From sequence record MN794232.1: a DNA stretch of 64,000 nt; one strand, given 5' to 3'. Made by a program: the position numbers and the translations under genes. Position 1 is the stretch's first letter. Every line of letters begins with the position of its first letter. A model generated the notes under the pieces. The model was not told the origin of the DNA and did no database searches. It saw nothing but the letters and a program-made list of their open reading frames with translations. Below, one piece after another: positions 43,914 through 61,005 of this stretch.

Positions 43914-44438
43914 CTATTTGCGCCCTTTACGATTTGCCTTATTTGCTTTTCTTTTTGCTCTACGCAATTCTTTGCGTTTTGCGATTTTGTCTGCACGTCT
44001 AACTGCATCATAATCCGCAGCACACGACGCAGCAAACGCATCAGGCTTGAAAACGGGTTCTTGACCCACGTATCCCAAGATAGTGCCCTTAGCTTCGTTA
44101 TACGCAACGTGTGAACGATGGGATGGATCTGGGTTGATGTCAACGTGAACTTCAAACCCACGAGTACCACACATTGGCTTAACACGCAGAGCAGTTTCAC
44201 CTGCTTTATAGACTTCATTCATCAAACGACTACGAATACCATCTTTACAAGACATGTACGCTGGTTCAGTTTCGATAGATTTGAATACTTGAGCGCCTTT
44301 ACTACCCTCAAGGTGAATGATGATTACAGTAGCGTAACTAATCATATCACTCTTACGCTTGCTATCACACCCAACATAAATCGTACTGTTCGGATGACTG
44401 TTATTGATAGCTGTTTCAATTGCTTCCCAATCGAACAT
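43914..44438 (-). CDS. RNase H-like YkuK (DUF458) family protein
   Basis: IYVGCDS, YATVIIIH, RLMNEV, EVHVDIN, KPDAFAASCAAD. Confidence 0.8.
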   Translation of the reverse strand: MFDWEAIETAINNSHPNSTIYVGCDSKRKSDMISYATVIIIHLEGSKGAQVFKSIETEPAYMSCKDGIRSRLMNEVYKAGETALRVKPMCGTRGFEVHVDINPDPSHRSHVAYNEAKGTILGYVGQEPVFKPDAFAASCAADYDAVRRADKIAKRKELRRAKRKANKANRKGRK

Positions 44439-44489
44439 TTTCACCTCTGTACAAAAAAAGGGCAGCACAATGCCGCCCTTATCACTTAT

Positions 44490-45929
44490 TTAAAAGCTGT
44501 AGCGATCAACGCCTACAGTTTTCAGCATGATCTTGACTGGCTCAAGCTCACCACCTAACAATGAAGTCAGGATAGATGGGCTACAACCCGATACCAGTGC
44601 AGTACCCGCTTCGCCAGCTTTAACCGGAACGTTGCCAAGACGACCACGAATGTTCCAGAAGACTAGTTGTGGCATTTCATAGCCAGCACGTGCGTACATA
44701 GCTTTGATTGCGTCGAAGTTTGCACGTTCGCCGCGACCGTACCAACCACCACCAGTATTTGCTTGGTCGAATTCCATGTCGCTCATGATAAGCAACTTAG
44801 TTGGCATTTCTTCTTGTGAAAGATTTGCACGTTTTGCACGCTCTAACAGAACGTTGAAGCACTTACCGATGTTTGTGCTCATGTCTTCACCTGAGCGATT
44901 CATGTTGTCAAGACGCTCTTTTAGTGAGCTACCGCGCAACTGGTGGAAGTGCGGATCGCTTGAGAACGAAATGAACTGATCTTTGAAGATTCCTTCATTG
45001 CGTTCAGCAACATAGATGCCAAGAGACATTGCAACTTGCTTACAAGTCACGCCAGAACGATCTGTACCTGCGTTGATTGGCGTGCTCATAGAGCCAGATA
45101 CGTCAACAACAGGGATGATGCGCTCATCAGAGCCTTCCATGTAGTTCGGCAGAGCTTTCCATTGCTCGTTCGCTACAGACGCATTGCCATGACTAACGCT
45201 CTTAACGACATCATATGGGAACAATGCACCAGCGTTGATCTTCGCTTCACCTTTTTGAAGTGACTCGATGTAGCTTGTGTAACGAGCAGAAGCGTTACGA
45301 CCGAATGCTTGTTGATAACGAGCAGACGCTACAGATGGCAACTTACCAAAGTCGATTGCATCCCATTCTTGCGCACACATCTTCTGTTCAACAGTGTCAG
45401 ACAAAAGTGCTAGAATCTTACGCCACTGCTTCGCAGTTACACCAAGAGACTTGATTGTGCGCTTGAACACATGACCGTTTTTGCTGTTTTCACGTGGGAA
45501 CCACTTAGCAGCAAGACTATTCTTGTCGTTTACAATCGCGTTTGACCACAATGTGATCGCGTCTTTCTCAAGTCTTGTACCGAACGCAGAAATCAAGTCG
45601 TCGAAACGACCTAGTTCTGGAATTTTCGACATTACAGCACGAGCTACGTCAGGCTGCTCATTACAAAGCTTAGTGAATAGAGTACGGAAAGTACCACGTT
45701 CACCCGCACCACCGCGAACATCACGAGACCACAAAAGAATGCGTGTCGCTAGTTCTGGGTTTTCTGCAAACGCACGACCGAACAGTGTTTTAGACTGATC
45801 GTTGCCACGCATAGCAGCAATACCGAAGAACAAGTTTAGACACTCGTTACCTGAAGTGCTGTGAGTAACTGCACCGTTTGCTGTACGTGAATCGTTTGAT
45901 TGCATAGCGTTCATAAATAGACTAGTCAT
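44490..45929 (-). CDS. TROVE-like DUF2828 / vWA protein (Ro60-related architecture)
   Basis: TANGA...SG..CLNLFF, RDVRGGAGER, AAKWFPR, MIDAS DVSGSM, MSTN, SDMEFD, VFWN; start set by GGAG SD. Confidence 0.8.
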   Translation of the reverse strand: MTSLFMNAMQSNDSRTANGAVTHSTSGNECLNLFFGIAAMRGNDQSKTLFGRAFAENPELATRILLWSRDVRGGAGERGTFRTLFTKLCNEQPDVARAVMSKIPELGRFDDLISAFGTRLEKDAITLWSNAIVNDKNSLAAKWFPRENSKNGHVFKRTIKSLGVTAKQWRKILALLSDTVEQKMCAQEWDAIDFGKLPSVASARYQQAFGRNASARYTSYIESLQKGEAKINAGALFPYDVVKSVSHGNASVANEQWKALPNYMEGSDERIIPVVDVSGSMSTPINAGTDRSGVTCKQVAMSLGIYVAERNEGIFKDQFISFSSDPHFHQLRGSSLKERLDNMNRSGEDMSTNIGKCFNVLLERAKRANLSQEEMPTKLLIMSDMEFDQANTGGGWYGRGERANFDAIKAMYARAGYEMPQLVFWNIRGRLGNVPVKAGEAGTALVSGCSPSILTSLLGGELEPVKIMLKTVGVDRYSF

Positions 45930-45962
45930 TGCTGTAAGCTCCATTATCAAGGATCAAAAAAT

Positions 45963-46565
45963 ATGTTTCACATTGTATATCAAATCACAAACTTAATAAA
46001 CAATAAAATTTACGTCGGTAAACATTCAACAGAGAACATCTACGACGATTACATGGGCTCGGGTAAATTGTTAACCAGAGCCATTTCAAAGTACGGTAAA
46101 GAAAATTTCATCAAAGAGATATTATTCGTTTCACATGATGAGACTGAAGCATATCACAAAGAGTCTGAAATTGTCAACGAAAACTTTGTTTTGCGTCAAG
46201 ACACATACAATTTAAAAATCGGTGGTCTTGGTGGATCATCAGGAATCGAATCACCATGTAAAGGTCGTGCGTTGAGTGAAGATACTAAACGAAAAATGAG
46301 AAAAAGTAAACAATTTTCTCAAAATCATTTAGATTATCTGTCAGATAAGTTAACATCATACAACAAATCTCGCACAGGACAATCAAGAGACGACCTTAAA
46401 GGGTGTTCGAACCCGATGCATAAAGGAATGTGGGTTACACCCGCAGGTAAATTTGAATCGTCCAGCGAAGCTGCATTGGTGAACAATTGCAGTCAATCAA
46501 CTGTAGTTCGACGCTGCAAAAACCCAAATTTCGACGATTGGTTTATCGAAAATTCATCCGAGTGA
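45963..46565 (+). mobile_element. GIY-YIG (Seg-like) homing endonuclease
   Basis: IVYQITNLINNKIYVGKH...YMGSG...YNLKIGG; antisense to neighbours; CATAAATA at 45912. Confidence 0.9.
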
Positions 46566-47189: not shown

Positions 47190-47556
47190 CAATATATTCC
47201 TTAATCGGCTTAGAAAAGTGACGAATACAAGAACTGTCAAGACGCTTGCGACCATCACCGTCTATATCTGGTAGCGTGTAATCGTCATTGAATGGCTGAC
47301 CGCTTTCTTTCGCAATCTCATAGGCATCGGCTCGATTGAAGTATTCACCACAATAGTTGATAAACCCTTGACCGCGATCACCAAGTTCGCTTCGATGTTC
47401 ATACGTGCAGCCAAGCTCTTTCAATAGCTTGAAGACTGATTGCATGTTTCGACCGAAATGACAGCTATCGGCAACAACAATGTCGCGCACTTCACCGTTC
47501 GGTAGTGTTACTCGAATTGCATTAGCAGCAGACGATATTACATTGACGTGCGACAT
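47182..47556 (-). CDS. hypothetical protein
   Basis: RH...QGFIN..GEYFNR..AY.IA motif common in phage proteins. Confidence 0.65.
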   Translation of the reverse strand: MSHVNVISSAANAIRVTLPNGEVRDIVVADSCHFGRNMQSVFKLLKELGCTYEHRSELGDRGQGFINYCGEYFNRADAYEIAKESGQPFNDDYTLPDIDGDGRKRLDSSCIRHFSKPIKEYIDG

Positions 47557-47897
47557 GTATCGTACCTCATAAAAATTGAACCAACGCGCTTATACTGACC
47601 AGAGTGAGAAAGCAACAGAGCCATTTTACTATGACCAACGGGATTACTTGTCACTAGAACAACAGTGCGCGGAAAATTACGATGATCAATCGCATGAGAG
47701 AGAATATCGTATCCCTCTCTACCAACATCATCACCTAGATCGTTGTCCATGAATAGCGTGATGTCAGTTAGATTTGTGTGCTTGACGAAATTCATACCGT
47801 CTTCGAATGTTCGAAGCACGAGTTTTTCACCATCACGTACGTAATCAGACGTGAACTTATCAATATCACGCAGATCATCAATCATAACATAAAACAT
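47538..47897 (-). CDS. cyclic-phosphate-processing receiver-like domain protein
   Basis: IDDLR, DNDLG, GYD, TSNPVG motifs. Confidence 0.7.
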   Translation of the reverse strand: MFYVMIDDLRDIDKFTSDYVRDGEKLVLRTFEDGMNFVKHTNLTDITLFMDNDLGDDVGREGYDILSHAIDHRNFPRTVVLVTSNPVGHSKMALLLSHSGQYKRVGSIFMRYDTCRTSM

Positions 47898-47934
47898 ATA
47901 AATACTCTTGTTATCATCAAACAGGACGGTCTAC

Positions 47935-48480
47935 ATGAACTATTTGAAAATTTATGACAGTATAGTGAAACGAGCACAAAAACGCAAGACAATTTCAGGG
48001 TATTTTGAAAGCCATCACATTTTACCGAGGTGTATGGGAGGCAATAACAAAAAATCAAACATCGTTAGATTGACCGCAAAGGAGCACTACATTTCACACT
48101 TATTGTTAGCTAAGATTCACAACACTCGCGGTTTATGGTTAGCCGTCGCATCAATGAGGGGATGCAATGGCGGAGGTGTGAGATTTACAGGATCTATGTA
48201 CGAAACTGCAAAACGAAAAATTTCCGAAAGTATCCGAGGTGAGAATAACCCGAATTACGGTGGTCTCAGAGAAGAAACAAAACAAAAACTTTCAATCAAA
48301 GCCACTGGCAGAAAACACTCACAAGAGACTAAAGATGCTATGAGCAAAAATCGTCGAGGTGAGAATAACGGCATGTACGGAAAGAAACAACCTACCGAAA
48401 CATGCATTCACTGTGGAAAGATTGCGTCGAAATCAAACATCAAACGCTGGCACAATGATAACTGCAAGTTAAATACATGA
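47935..48480 (+). mobile_element. HNH (Mob-like) homing endonuclease with NUMOD3-like repeats
   Basis: ESHHILPRCMGG...NIVRLTAKEHYISH; exact TATAAATA at 47897-47904; antisense. Confidence 0.9.
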
Positions 48481-54786: not shown

Positions 54787-54861
54787 TGGTGGACACGCAG
54801 GGAGTCGAACCCTATCCTCCTCATTGCAAGTGAGGCGCTTTCCCAATTAAGCTAACGGCCC
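54787..54861 (-). tRNA. tRNA-Ala(TGC), imperfect acceptor stem
   Basis: G3-U70 present; stem pairs only with a bulge. Confidence 0.75.
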
Positions 54862-55550: not shown

Positions 55551-55626
55551 TGGCGGACCGCCCGAGACTCGAACTCGGAACTCCTCGCTTAACAGGCGAG
55601 CACTCTAACCATTGAGTTAGCGATCC
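55551..55626 (-). tRNA. tRNA-Asn(GTT)
   Basis: cloverleaf, CCA. Confidence 0.93.
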
Positions 55627-58315: not shown

Positions 58316-58561
58316 TTATCGACCTAGGTGTTTTCGCTTGTTCATTTCAACGAGGATTTCATCGTTGTAATGACGGTTCAGTTCAACATACTTCTTGTGC
58401 TGATCTGAAGTCAACTCGTTGGTGTCATTCAGATGTTTCAAGAATCCAAGAGGTTTGCGAAACGACTTGCGATATTCGTTCAGACGCTCGTCCGTTAGAT
58501 TATGCAGTTGTTTCGGAGTCAGTAACGTTTTATTGATGTCAAAACTCATGTTGTACCTCAC
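58316..58561 (-). CDS. hypothetical protein
   Basis: GAGG RBS before MSFD. Confidence 0.6.
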   Translation of the reverse strand: MRYNMSFDINKTLLTPKQLHNLTDERLNEYRKSFRKPLGFLKHLNDTNELTSDQHKKYVELNRHYNDEILVEMNKRKHLGR

Positions 58562-58574
58562 TTGTTATTAAAAT

Positions 58575-58690
58575 TGGTAGTCGGGGCTGGATTCGAACCA
58601 GCGACCACGTGCTTAACAGGCAATTGAAGGAGTGCTGGAGCGATACTTGACAGTATCATTCTTCGTGCTCTACCACTGAGCTACCCGACT
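58575..58690 (-). ncRNA. tRNA-Asn-like RNA A with 41-nt insertion in anticodon stem
   Basis: removing the insert gives a perfect 75-nt tRNA-Asn(GTT) with CCA. Confidence 0.85.
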
Positions 58691-58695
58691 ATGAA

Positions 58696-59217
58696 TTATT
58701 TAACTTTGAACTTCAAATTACGCCAGTCAAAGTTTCGTTTGTTCTTTGTGTTGTAGAACGTGCCCCAATCAATAGCAATCGGACAGTTCTTACTACCTAC
58801 ACGAGCGATAAAGACATCGTGAGTCTCGCTGTAACGCTCTCTAAGCTCTTTTAAACGCTTATCGTAGTTAGCGATATACTCTGCACACGCTTTGTTGTAA
58901 GCTGCTTTAGAGAAGCGTTCGTCACTCGAAAATACATTACCCAGATAAGGTCGAATAACACGAACTCGTTCTTTAGACCAACCCATACTAAAGCTGTTTT
59001 CAATCTCACCTGAGATTTCACCAGTCTTCTTACATCTAGCAAGAATGACCCAGCAACGTTCACGCCGAAAATCTTTTCGTACGTACACGTTAACGTGCTT
59101 GTCAATGTACTCTTGATAACGAGCGTTATACTCAGCACGCAGTTTATTGCGCACTTCAGGCGACATTGCAGCCCGTTCTTCTTTCGAAAACGCTTGTGCG
59201 AATTTCAATGGTTTCAT
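58696..59217 (-). CDS. hypothetical basic protein
   Basis: GAGGA RBS, start MKPL. Confidence 0.65.
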   Translation of the reverse strand: MKPLKFAQAFSKEERAAMSPEVRNKLRAEYNARYQEYIDKHVNVYVRKDFRRERCWVILARCKKTGEISGEIENSFSMGWSKERVRVIRPYLGNVFSSDERFSKAAYNKACAEYIANYDKRLKELRERYSETHDVFIARVGSKNCPIAIDWGTFYNTKNKRNFDWRNLKFKVK

Positions 59218-59230
59218 TATAATTTCCTCT

Positions 59231-59470
59231 TGGCGCCGCTCGTGTGAATCGAACACACGTCAAACACAACACCTCGTCCACCCAATTAGAGTTTCGAAGT
59301 AAGAGCTAATCAGCATTTCGGAGCAGTCGAGCGTTATTTCTACGAGTGAGCTTTCGACAACTCACACGCACTTTCTACCCGGTCCCAGTGATTCGGTACC
59401 AACGCAGGTTGCGAACCTACGTCTGCACTAATGCTGGGAAAACACTGCGTATTGTACACCAGTTAGCGGC
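59231..59470 (-). ncRNA. 240-nt RNA I with tRNA-like ends and CCA
   Basis: GCCGCT/AGCGGC-G-CCA; GTGTG-TTCGATT-CACAC. Confidence 0.75.
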
Positions 59471-59472
59471 AT

Positions 59473-59703
59473 TTAAAGATAGCTATCAAAGACAGCATCA
59501 TCAACTTCTTCAATATTGATGTCAGCGTAACACTCATTCGCAATTGCTTGAATTTCATCTATTGAAACTGTACCTGCGTACAATACAACAGCGTCGTTCG
59601 GAATCACGACATCACACATGTATTTGTTAAACATTGCAGTTCTGAAATCAGAATCAACAGAGTAACCGTGCATTGATGTGATAACTAGCAATTTATGTGA
59701 CAT
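59473..59703 (-). CDS. hypothetical protein
   Basis: GAGGA RBS; upstream TTGACA promoter. Confidence 0.65.
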   Translation of the reverse strand: MSHKLLVITSMHGYSVDSDFRTAMFNKYMCDVVIPNDAVVLYAGTVSIDEIQAIANECYADINIEEVDDAVFDSYL

Positions 59704-59782
59704 AATGTTTTCCTCGTGTAGTTGATAATGTGTATACTACACGTTGATGAAACGCCTGTCAACAACTTTTTCAAATTATTTT

Positions 59783-59859
59783 TGGTAGCCCCTCTCGGAT
59801 TCGAACCGAGAACCTGACGATTATGAGTCGTCTGCTACTACCGTTACAGCTAAGGGGCT
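59783..59859 (-). tRNA. tRNA-Ile2-like (CAT)
   Basis: AGCCCCT acceptor and GACTCATAATCG arm resemble enterobacterial Ile2. Confidence 0.8.
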
Positions 59860-60226
59860 ATCGTTCTAGAAATCTACCGACTTTAGCAGCGAAGATGTTT
59901 GCTTCTTCTGCAATCAAAGCAGTTGATTTCATTTGATGAAAAGCGTCTTGTTGATGCAGAACATCTAGTTTACCAGCGCATTTCATCAGTTCTTTTACTG
60001 ATTGCATAATCTCAATGTTATCAAGCTGACTCGTGTCAGGGTGATGATTGAGACTATCCAAGACAGGGAGTACTTGTTGATAGTAACCCATGCCGATGAA
60101 GTTTATCATAAGTCTGTACTGCATTTCAACAGCAAATGTACAATATTTTCGAAGATTGCGTTTTACAATCTCACAGCGATGTAAGATACAATCAAGTTCG
60201 TCATTTATGTCATCAAACTTATTCAT
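59858..60226 (-). CDS. hypothetical protein
   Basis: GAGG RBS, start MNKFDD. Confidence 0.6.
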   Translation of the reverse strand: MNKFDDINDELDCILHRCEIVKRNLRKYCTFAVEMQYRLMINFIGMGYYQQVLPVLDSLNHHPDTSQLDNIEIMQSVKELMKCAGKLDVLHQQDAFHQMKSTALIAEEANIFAAKVGRFLER

Positions 60227-60240
60227 AAAACCTCGAAAAT

Positions 60241-60360
60241 TGGTGGAGAGTGATGGATTTGAACCACCGACCAAAAGATTTACCAGTTAAGGTTTGCAGC
60301 ATGAATGCTTGTCAGTATTCTTTAACATTCTTTTGCTCTACCAGACTGAGCTAACTCTCC
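60241..60360 (-). ncRNA. tRNA-like RNA B with 50-nt structured anticodon loop
   Basis: canonical acceptor, D and T arms and CCA; AAAGA/TCTTT stem encloses module. Confidence 0.85.
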
Positions 60361-60365
60361 ATTGT

Positions 60366-60476
60366 ATTACTACTTTGTTTCGCTTGTCAGGGCGTCGAAA
60401 CGCTACCTAACCAAGGATTCGAACCTTTTAACCAACACCTCGCGAAAATTATTTTTCTCGTTGGCAAAGTAGTAAT
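60366..60476 (-). ncRNA. second permuted tRNA mimic RNA J
   Basis: 12-bp terminal stem, hairpin, AAGG-TTCGAAT-CCTT T arm, UUCG-capped hairpin. Confidence 0.6.
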
Positions 60477-60487
60477 GTAAAAACATA

Positions 60488-60613
60488 TAGTTGCGGGTGC
60501 AGGATTCGAACCTACATCACGATCTTATGAATGATATGCGAAATTGATTGCCGTACAGATTCTTATCAGAATCAGTTTTGTGCTACGTGTGCTACCACTT
60601 ACACCAACCCGCA
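60488..60613 (-). ncRNA. tRNA-like RNA C with module insertion
   Basis: D and T arms canonical; 15-bp terminal stem 60484-60621; ends ACTA, not CCA. Confidence 0.8.
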
Positions 60614-60882: not shown

Positions 60883-61005
60883 TGGTCGAGTGTAACGGAA
60901 TCGAACCGTTCCCACGATCTCCCTATGATATGCGTAAATTGGTTGCTGAATATAATCATGTCTGATTACAGTATGCTACGTGTGCTGCCACTACACCAAC
61001 ACTCG
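60883..61005 (-). ncRNA. tRNA-like RNA D with module insertion
   Basis: paralog of C; CCA present; 21-bp perfect inverted repeat 60873-60893/60999-61019. Confidence 0.82.

Follow-up and report, generated by a model that had tools for sequence, protein, structure and literature searches.

What is a tRNA-shaped gene doing in a phage tRNA array when its anticodon stem is broken by a structured insertion? The purpose of such arrays in large phages is itself debated, supply of codons standing against replacement of tRNAs destroyed by host defence. The gene in question, here called RNA A, lies in a 64,000-nucleotide (nt) stretch of sequence record MN794232.1 (the window), which comes from a KVP40-type Vibrio phage and is, over the 2.3 kb compared, 100% identical to Vibrio phage VH1_2019. 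RNA A-type genes have been in GenBank since 2003 (AY283928) under the name 'tRNA-Pseudo', that is, as tRNAscan pseudogenes.

We find that RNA A is a functional, conserved, tRNA-shaped non-coding RNA of a phage-specific family and not a decaying gene. The module shared by the members, its conservation and its wide distribution seem to be new here: the KVP40 annotation holds none of them, and a literature search, which did not reach the KVP40 genome paper, returned no description of interrupted phage tRNAs, of the module, or of its conservation and distribution. As for what the insertion does, we give roughly an even chance to a protein-binding arm that is retained on a specialised, non-decoding tRNA mimic, and the rival explanations are weighed below where the evidence bears on them.

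A tRNA-Asn body with an arm in its anticodon stem

Read on the minus strand (58690 to 58575), RNA A consists of a 5′ acceptor strand AGTCGGG, TA, a D arm GCTC-AGTGGTA-GAGC followed by A26, C27 and G28, the 41-nt insert, then UGC, the loop CUGUUAA, GCACG, the variable loop UGGUC, a T arm GCTGG-TTCGAAT-CCAGC, the 3′ acceptor strand CCCGACT, A73 and an encoded CCA (Table 1). The insertion point, 28|29 in tRNA numbering, is unambiguous. The 5′ strand of the anticodon stem is broken by these 41 nt, and a contiguous 5-bp stem appears only after the flanks are joined in silico. The Rfam tRNA model RF00005, whose gathering score is 29, recognizes 58578..58690(-) at 49.8 bits (whole-window E = 1e-7), its alignment counting 54 nt as an insertion between CG and CG. 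The full-length gene received no ARAGORN call in a scan of the window, and the 75 nt of the joined flanks are called as tRNA-Asn(GUU). The 7-nt loop, with U33, the anticodon GUU and a purine at position 37, is that of a canonical elongator tRNA-Asn. The cloverleaf is not the minimum free energy fold of RNA A, which comes to -35.7 kcal/mol as against -22.3 kcal/mol when the designed fold is imposed; we judged this result uninformative, as is usual for tRNAs. Elsewhere in the window, 54790-54861 (-) is a tRNA by Rfam at 45.7 bits and has no ARAGORN call.

A preliminary description of this locus, made from its letters, had proposed a tRNA-Asn interrupted by a structured 41-nt insertion between positions 28 and 29, with a normal tRNA-Asn at 55551. 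Sequence, Rfam and ARAGORN bear out the interrupted gene and the 75-nt joined sequence; the insert has its hairpin, GATAC-UGUCAA-GUAUC, at a non-canonical site, conserved and covarying; and ARAGORN places the normal tRNA-Asn(GTT) at 55551..55626(-).

Table 1. RNA A, its parts, its paralogues and neighbouring features, in coordinates of the window
Feature	Position	Strand	Evidence and remarks
RNA A, 116-nt tRNA-shaped gene including encoded CCA, with 41-nt arm in anticodon stem	58575..58690	-	KVP40 'tRNA-Pseudo-3'; Rfam tRNA, model R1, KVP40 annotation
RNA A, model match	58578-58690	-	R1 102.5 bits
RNA A insert, 41 nt, AAGAATGATACTGTCAAGTATCGCTCCAGCACTCCTTCAAT	58623..58663	-	Between tRNA positions 28 and 29; joining of the flanks gives tRNA-Asn by ARAGORN
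Upper anticodon stem, C27 and G28	58664..58665	-	Pair across the insert with C42, G43 (58608-58609); helix 3 of alignment A5
Lower anticodon stem UGC/GCA, loop CUGUUAA (GUU = 58615-58617), 3′ strand GCACG	58608..58622	-	Identical in diverged 6E35.1a/D482 orthologue
Discriminator base A73	58578	-	G73 in normal phage Asn tRNAs
Module hairpin, stem GAUAC/GUAUC, hexaloop UGUCAA	58642..58657	-	Alignment A5
Single-stranded tail UCCAGCA	58633..58639	-	Pattern and family consensus (U-N-C-A-G-C-A-A)
Enclosing helix, 5′ strand AAG	58661..58663	-	Pairs with CUU at 58627-58629; by eye, tentative
Normal tRNA-Asn(GUU), same phage	55551..55626	-	ARAGORN; Rfam 63.8 bits; G73, anticodon as in RNA A
RNA B	60241..60360 with CCA; model match 60244-60360	-	KVP40 'tRNA-Pseudo-4'; Rfam tRNA 55.8 bits; R1 72.3 bits
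RNA C	60491..60613	-	R1 105.6 bits; module at 28/29, CG / insert / AUC-loop-GAUCG, 8-nt loop
RNA D	60886..61005	-	R1 89.8 bits; module at 28/29, loop AUAGGGA
186-aa ORF	58696..59256	-	Directly upstream of RNA A; blastp homologues beside insert-bearing tRNAs in 6E35.1a and L017; no Pfam match
81-aa ORF	58316..58561	-	Directly downstream of RNA A; blastp homologues beside insert-bearing tRNAs in 6E35.1a, L017 and L026; no Pfam match
cREC_REC (cyclic-phosphate processing receiver) small protein	47538..47897	-	Pfam
DUF2828 + DUF7788 protein, 486 aa, KVP40.0300 homologue	44490..45953	-	Profile E = 2.8e-159; Pfam 104 and 156 bits
PF04308 'RNase H-like' protein	43914..44468	-	Pfam 62 bits; directly downstream of DUF2828 gene

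Conservation and paralogues in KVP40-type phages

RNA A is 98-100% identical across about 30 phage genomes, in many of which the surrounding 2.3 kb is just 84-86% identical. In the distant clade formed by 6E35.1a and the D48x phages the orthologue is about 85% identical; in that of 6E35.1a/D482 the D arm, hairpin, tail, T arm and entire anticodon stem-loop are all in place, a C-to-U change in the hairpin gives a U·G pair, and the acceptor stem has been rewritten through compensatory changes. The VS1 orthologue carries G73.

RNA A had been treated as a one-off. It is in fact one of four module-bearing paralogues in the window, RNAs A-D, all of them matched on the minus strand by a covariance model of the module-bearing family (R1), and it belongs to a large phage-wide family. 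RNAs A, C and D are built alike (CG / insert / 3 bp). In RNA B, which has orthologues in D482, VS1, L031 and L017 (L numbers denote our loci), the module lies within or beside an intact 5-bp stem AAAGA/UCUUU, and the loop is non-canonical, with 8-9 nt. The 8-nt 'anticodon' loop of RNA C reads AUUCAUAA in KVP40-type phages and AUUUCCAA in ValKK3, and in the 6E35.1a/D482 clade it is a normal 7-nt loop, AUUCUAA, with the anticodon UCU; orthologues of RNA C stand at L006:1617-1738 and L003:1829-1949.

The KVP40 annotation (AY283928) contains the same genes as tRNA-Pseudo-3 (RNA A), tRNA-Pseudo-4 (RNA B) and tRNA-Pseudo-5, and in phi-pp2 five tRNA-like genes of 113-123 nt are annotated in the same stretch. 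Pseudo-5 (L001:3575-3687, -) is an extra module-bearing gene between B and C that is absent from the window phage (~60361-60490), so the copy number of the family varies among near-identical phages. Other records label RNA A as tRNA-Val, tRNA-Ile or tRNA-OTHER, and its paralogues as tRNA-Asn, tRNA-Phe or tRNA-OTHER.

A shared module in phage tRNA arrays

The module has three parts: an A-rich 5′ run; a hairpin of 5-7 bp closed by C-G, with the hexaloop UGAYAA; and a single-stranded tail U-N-C-N-G-C-A(-A), UNCAGCAA, which stands exactly 6 nt past the closing G of the hairpin in all copies. A pattern made of the module plus a T loop was found at 39 IMG/VR loci, most of them unrelated to KVP40. 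The same pattern gave six matches in 596 Gb of bacterial genomes, only one of which looks genuine (on a 163-kb contig of a Bacteroides metagenome-assembled genome). Under R1 the long members (110-130 nt) score 58-112 bits and ordinary tRNAs at most 55 bits, and the model reveals tandem sets of five genes in L031 and of three genes each in L011 and L026. All module-bearing genes lie within phage tRNA arrays. One locus is that of Aeromonas phage phiAS5, and the Aeh1 group, which shares this region, carries the module too; no cultured phage represents the most populous lineage, whose anticodon is of the Tyr type. Rfam 15 scans, of the window at gathering scores and of 58400-60600 at E<=1, gave no match to the module.

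Some tRNA-like genes in these arrays depart from this plan. One, at L037:8851-8968 (+), has in the same place, between the CG/CG pairs of the upper anticodon stem, a different insert of about 56 nt that lacks the UGAYAA module, which suggests that this site can host more than one kind of insert. Two others in the phiAS5 group, L026:1142-1259 (-) and L044:1911-2028 (-), adjoin module-bearing copies and possess a second, internal T-arm-like element (GGTTCGAATCC twice).

Structure and covariation

Each copy was dissected by anchoring it on its T arm and walking backwards. Most copies obey a single rule (type I): position 26 is followed by 0-2 nt that pair with 42-43, then by the insert; beyond it the 5′ strand is completed by its last 3-5 nt, the loop has 7 nt, with U33 and a purine in position 37, and the 3′ strand is whole. 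This puts the insert at 26/27, 27/28 or 28/29, where the D arm hinges on the anticodon arm.

A model-guided alignment of 49 members with 26 pairs (A5) has 95.2% of its paired cells filled by pairs, vs 60.1% in shuffles, and a covariation score of 0.867, vs 0.213 in shuffles and at most 0.172 for slid partners. For the module hairpin, 97.6% of cells are paired and four of five pairs show changes on both sides; for helix 3, the pairs that span the insert, the figure is 87.6%, with the first insert-spanning pair occurring as CG 26, GC 8, AU 5, UA 3 and GU 2 times. Covariation thus supports both the module hairpin and the anticodon-stem pairs across the insert. In the RNA A lineage a further 3-bp helix, AAG/CUU, may enclose the module, its variable pair reading G-C in KVP40, G·U in VS1 and A-U in 6E35.1a/D482; this helix is tentative, being drawn by eye from three lineages, and it could not be recovered from the family-wide alignment columns.

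In the B-type copies, in KVP40 Pseudo-5 and in a class II body of locus L039, the module sits inside or instead of the anticodon loop, and the loops have 8-9 nt or are missing. These copies, too, are conserved across clades, with compensatory changes in the hairpin, and it follows from the B-type and Pseudo-5-type copies that what the family conserves at its core is the module together with the tRNA body, to which the anticodon loop does not belong. The L039 gene (164-300, -) is a class II tRNA body with a long variable arm, in which the module replaces the anticodon loop between the strands of an intact 5-bp stem CCAGU/ACUGG. We also considered whether the module could be a sigma-70 promoter, which some members resemble (CTGACA…N17…TAAAAT), and rejected this: RNA A lacks a -10-like box, and the stem covaries as RNA.

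The 'pseudo' and 'tRNA-OTHER' labels in KVP40 and other records would fit tRNA genes that were inactivated when a small repeat element inserted, as would the lack of ARAGORN calls for these genes and some odd loops. We regard this as scarcely credible in view of the near-identity of the genes across phages whose flanks are ~85% identical, the strong compensatory covariation of every helix, the hairpin within the insert among them, the loop and tail nucleotides that are invariant across unrelated contigs, and the several conserved paralogues per genome. The preliminary description had taken a random insert among orthologues as the mark of a simple pseudogene; RNA A, insert and body, is conserved at 98-100%, which argues against one.

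Redundant anticodons and mismatched identity elements

Where an array holds 10 or more normal tRNAs, the anticodon of an insert-bearing gene is usually also that of a normal tRNA in the same locus: this is so for 16 of 21 genes, RNA A included, compared with a baseline of 114 of 417 normal tRNAs that have the anticodon of another (odds ratio 8.5, p = 8.6e-6). The discriminator base was checked in the same arrays. Normal tRNAs obey the discriminator rules in 126 of 134 cases (G73 in 16/17 Asn and 25/25 Asp, A73 in 13/13 Tyr, C73 in 10/10 His, U73 in 8/9 Gly), and N73 fits the anticodon in only 10 of 18 insert-bearing genes (p = 5.7e-5). RNA A has A73, and the window's own normal tRNA-Asn has G73. 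The term 'perfect tRNA-Asn' in the preliminary description needs correction at the discriminator; likewise, the proposal there that the tRNA is chargeable becomes doubtful, because A73 replaces the G73 of normal Asn tRNAs.

Bacterial Tyr, Ser and Leu tRNAs have a long variable arm. In all five dissected module-bearing genes with an anticodon for Tyr, Ser or Leu, the variable loop is short. Moreover, anticodons switch while the tRNA body stays constant: one scaffold occurs with GUU, GUC, UUC and UCU, a second with GUA and GUG, and a third with UUC and GUC.

The choice of anticodons is also skewed. Counted once per lineage-anticodon combination (n=24), G-U-N anticodons (Asn, Asp, Tyr, His) make up 10 of 24 combinations vs ~10% expected (p = 5e-5), followed by UUC and UCC. 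The queuosine family consists of the G-U-N tRNAs, which anticodon nucleases of the colicin E5 type also target, while tRNAs with UUU, UUC and UCU are the targets of other anticodon nucleases. Because the skew matches nuclease and queuosine targets, we propose that these RNAs may act as a bait or substrate mimic.

These data bear on the possibility that the arm is retained and the RNA still translates, the arm being a second variable arm at the hinge that would protect the anticodon stem against host anticodon nucleases or bring in a modifying enzyme. Geometrically the insert does form a junction arm where the D arm meets the anticodon arm (26/27 to 28/29), the canonical anticodon loop and CCA are kept, and the enriched G-U-N and UUC anticodons are known nuclease targets. 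We nevertheless hold it to be very unlikely: identity elements often misfit the anticodon, so that charging would be wrong or poor; a 40-nt arm would be expected, from ribosome structures, to clash with the ribosomal A and P sites; and copies with 8-9-nt loops are conserved.

Splicing signatures and insert-free alleles

The preliminary description left the choice between a novel excised mini-intron and a permanent protein-binding handle. Its exclusion of a group I intron is upheld by the length of 41 nt, the position in a stem and the lack of an Rfam match. A known ribozyme or riboswitch in the insert was considered and rejected, since cmscan of 58400-60600 against Rfam at E<=1 returned only tRNA and chance matches, with no ribozyme, intron or riboswitch. 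Judged by eye, the insert has no match to a hammerhead, pistol, preQ1, K-turn, tetraloop-receptor or ToxI motif, and 41 nt is far below any self-splicing intron that is known. A bulge-helix-bulge (BHB) requires four base pairs between an exon edge and the intron, with a 3-nt bulge on either side of this helix to mark the splice sites. Neither the exon-1 edge (CGTG/GTGC) nor the exon-2 edge (GGCA/AGGC/CAGG/ACAG) finds a 4-nt complement in the insert, so a BHB cannot form. No EndA-like protein was seen among the selected window ORFs scanned. The junction sequences are unconserved save for a frequent U-A start on the 5′ side. Exact or gapped junction searches of IMG/VR returned no insert-free allele of RNA A or of the Tyr scaffold, the latter being present in about 10 insert-bearing copies.

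Could the insert nevertheless be a new kind of tRNA intron, an element of about 40 nt that is cut out at 28/29 by itself or by a phage or host endonuclease guided by the hairpin and the tail, whereupon phage heal-and-seal enzymes would rejoin the halves into a 75-nt tRNA? Such an element could be a maturation switch or a selfish passenger. Removal of the insert from RNA A gives a perfect 5-bp stem and a tRNA-Asn that ARAGORN can call, and the same is true of most members of type I; U33 and R37 in a 7-nt loop are kept together with the encoded CCA; and the stem pairs that span the insert covary. The module occurs at the same structural site in very different scaffolds, as a mobile element with a fixed target site would; genes for GIY-YIG and HNH endonucleases recur in the vicinity, and the cREC protein, the 2H phosphoesterase 57B and the nuclease-fold PF04308 protein are in the neighbourhood. 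On the other side are the lack of insert-free alleles for the two scaffolds searched, the junctions that share little beyond the 5′ U-A, the impossibility of a BHB, the absence of a ribozyme match and the small size of the insert. The products would also often be mis-identified tRNAs (N73 mismatch in 8/18, no class II arm in 5/5, a His anticodon on a Tyr body) or redundant with normal ones, and the conserved B-type copies would yield no canonical loop. Weighing these, we think an intron fairly unlikely, yet a rival to be taken seriously. Its more specific form, a third, phage-specific kind of tRNA intron that is known by the UGAYAA hairpin and the UNCAGCAA tail, is cut by a phage nuclease (for example, the PF04308 protein) and has its halves rejoined by phage RNA-repair enzymes, is in our estimate distinctly unlikely; if true, it would mean that the tRNA supply of the phage is gated by a splicing step under phage control.

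A handle fits better than a mini-intron because the copies are redundant, their identity elements are mismatched, their anticodons switch, no insert-free alleles were found and paralogues have non-canonical loops, and these same results argue that the family does not simply consist of codon tRNAs of the phage with an intron in them.

Neighbouring genes and candidate protein partners

When the ORFs of the module loci were clustered, the largest cluster, present at nine loci, was a protein of 440-570 aa, and six of the seven members tested contain DUF2828 and DUF7788 (vWA-type), with E values down to 4e-28 and 5e-54. The DUF2828 gene occurs in 9 of ~36 independent loci, always on the strand of the RNA and 0.2-6.4 kb from it (often 0.2-2.5 kb). 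The window copy, too, is on the same strand as RNA A, 12.6 kb downstream; a tblastn search with the divergent L016 DUF2828 protein had no Vibrio phage among the matches listed, and a profile search later found it. The annotation of GAP32 refers to KVP40.0300. The gene for a PF04308 protein that follows DUF2828 in the window belongs to a family that adjoins insert-bearing tRNAs in five other loci.

AlphaFold modelled the DUF2828 protein poorly, at pLDDT 58.6, as helical repeats followed by a vWA fold. With Foldseek, full-length alignments were obtained only with human Ro60 (rank 1, 504 columns) and Deinococcus radiodurans Rsr (rank 4, 524 columns), the remaining matches covering the vWA domain alone; a search of PDB sequences with the DUF2828 profile returned vWA domains only. 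Ro60 proteins bind Y RNAs, of which the bacterial YrlA type has a tRNA-like domain (PMC4201824), and the ROT/TROVE proteins that occur in some large phages have relatives in cells that act together with a tRNA-like partner (PMC7824862). The DUF2828 protein and the adjacent PF04308 protein are, on the strength of such models and gene order, candidate RNA-binding partners of the module, and a particle formed by DUF2828 and module RNA is a hypothesis with partial support.

Other genes point to RNA repair. The cREC family, represented by a small protein in the window, has been tied to RNA ligases and RNA repair (PMC7824862), and genes for the healing and sealing of RNA ends are found in these phages (the 2H phosphoesterase 57B and the cREC protein) and in their relatives (RNA ligases). 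We rejected gp57B as a specific partner, since its position reflects ancestral T4 synteny; a single-protein search that started from it gave close relatives only. Homologues of the 81-aa and 186-aa ORFs that flank RNA A (Table 1) stand beside other module tRNAs in a different order, and these two ORFs may be functionally linked.

Homing-type endonuclease genes are also present. In the stretch from the DUF2828 gene to the tRNA array, the other strand carries a GIY-YIG (SegE-like) gene at 45963-46565 (+) and an HNH + NUMOD3 homing-endonuclease gene at 47908-48480 (+). Among the metagenomic module loci, seven have GIY-YIG genes and six have HNH genes.

Comparison with known RNAs

By their logic the closest systems are Ro60-Y RNA, in its YrlA form, and, for the intron alternative, the archaeal non-canonical introns; RNA A lacks defining features of both. 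YrlA was also the closest analogue that the literature yielded, whereas papers retrieved for DUF2828 and TROVE were all unrelated. Like YrlA-type Y RNAs (PMC4201824), it is a small RNA in a family of roughly 100-130 nt that joins a tRNA-like domain, with D and T arms, to a module for protein binding, putative in its case, both arms of RNA A being present in the Rfam tRNA alignment. YrlA-type genes stand near a Ro60-type gene (helical repeat plus vWA) on the same strand, in a setting of RNA repair; here a DUF2828/vWA gene of putative Ro60 likeness is linked in a subset of loci. In contrast to RNA A, whose ends form an acceptor stem with CCA and whose family has a real anticodon stem-loop, the ends of YrlA form the Ro-binding stem in the place of the anticodon arm. 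The Ro60-binding motif of YrlA, GNCGAAN0-1G, lies near the 5′ end in that stem of 5′ and 3′ ends (PMC4201824). The partner gene, moreover, is DUF2828 and not an annotated TROVE gene, its linkage is partial, and no Y-RNA family of Rfam matched the window at gathering scores or 58400-60600 at E<=1.

Archaeal BHB introns, which are cut by EndA, resemble the insert in being short, in occupying non-canonical positions that include the anticodon stem, and in restoring the cloverleaf when deleted. They differ in that the junctions of RNA A cannot form a BHB, its carrier is a bacteriophage, no insert-free alleles were found for the two scaffolds searched, and archaeal introns have no conserved sequence module of their own whereas the RNA A insert does. 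The group I introns of bacterial tRNA genes (tRNA-Leu, fMet, Ile2, Arg) also interrupt a bacterial-type tRNA gene, but they are longer than 200 nt, have a P1-P9 core, sit in the anticodon loop and match Rfam, unlike the matchless 41 nt at stem position 28/29 of RNA A.

The stable RNAs C and D of T4 (species 1 and 2) share with RNA A an orphan status, a size of 119-139 nt, an unassigned function and a syntenic tRNA region (gene 1-57A-57B-...-tRNAs), in which they stand at the end of the tRNA cluster. They have no UGAYAA hairpin, no UNCAGCAA tail and no common motif by eye. T4 rnaC (L007:1909-2047, -) has a T arm CCGGG-TTCGAAT-CCCGG and an acceptor-like stem, and scores 17.5 bits against tRNA-Sec. 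We rejected rnaC and rnaD as homologues, given that they show no sequence or module similarity and that neither is among the R1 matches listed for L007. The family belongs with the tRNA-derived non-coding RNAs and tRNA mimics.

Discussion

If the arm is indeed a protein-binding handle, it would stay in the mature RNA, and the RNA would be a specialised extra copy that displays a chosen anticodon stem-loop on a tRNA body and is not an ordinary decoding tRNA. The conserved arm would be the docking site for a phage protein. More speculatively, the RNA might serve as a bait, decoy or adaptor for enzymes that read the anticodon loop, such as host anticodon nucleases or enzymes of the queuosine family, and, as Ro60 does with its tRNA-like Y RNAs, the Ro60-like DUF2828/vWA protein of the phage and its RNase H-like neighbour might assemble with it into a particle. 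We infer the retention of the arm, the non-decoding role, the function as bait or adaptor and the DUF2828/PF04308 partnership from the sequence comparisons described above.

Several observations weigh against this proposal. Most members keep what a spliced tRNA would need (a 5-bp stem after removal of the insert, U33, a purine at 37 and CCA), retention is deduced from comparing sequences, and the phage genes for healing and sealing RNA ends could serve a cut-and-rejoin pathway. The redundancy and N73 tests draw on partial loci and small numbers, and the discriminator rules, which derive from the arrays themselves and from knowledge of Escherichia coli, may not hold for every host. Concerning the partner, the likeness to Ro60 comes from a model with a pLDDT of 59 and has TM-scores of ~0.2, and neither RNA A nor the family consensus contains the Ro60-binding motif. 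DUF2828 genes also adjoin ordinary tRNA arrays (FelixO1-type CL1, and Listeria P100), and of 71 loci with DUF2828 only about 9 have a module RNA at 10 kb or less, about 62 showing none.

Taken together, the tRNA arrays of large phages regularly include an extra class of genes, tRNA-shaped RNAs with a dedicated and highly conserved arm, which combine a fast change of anticodon on a constant body, a skew to nuclease and queuosine anticodons and a gene setting of the RNA-repair type. Their arm is a compact, well-defined RNA motif without an Rfam 15 match in these scans, its carriers include the laboratory Vibrio phages KVP40, nt-1 and VH1, and the genes are at present mis-annotated, under the labels given above, or missed. 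Were the arm removed, a new splicing pathway in bacteria would be at hand. If, on the other hand, it is a protein handle, these RNAs could be the missing partners of the widespread, Ro60-like DUF2828 proteins of phages, or decoys in an arms race that centres on tRNA.

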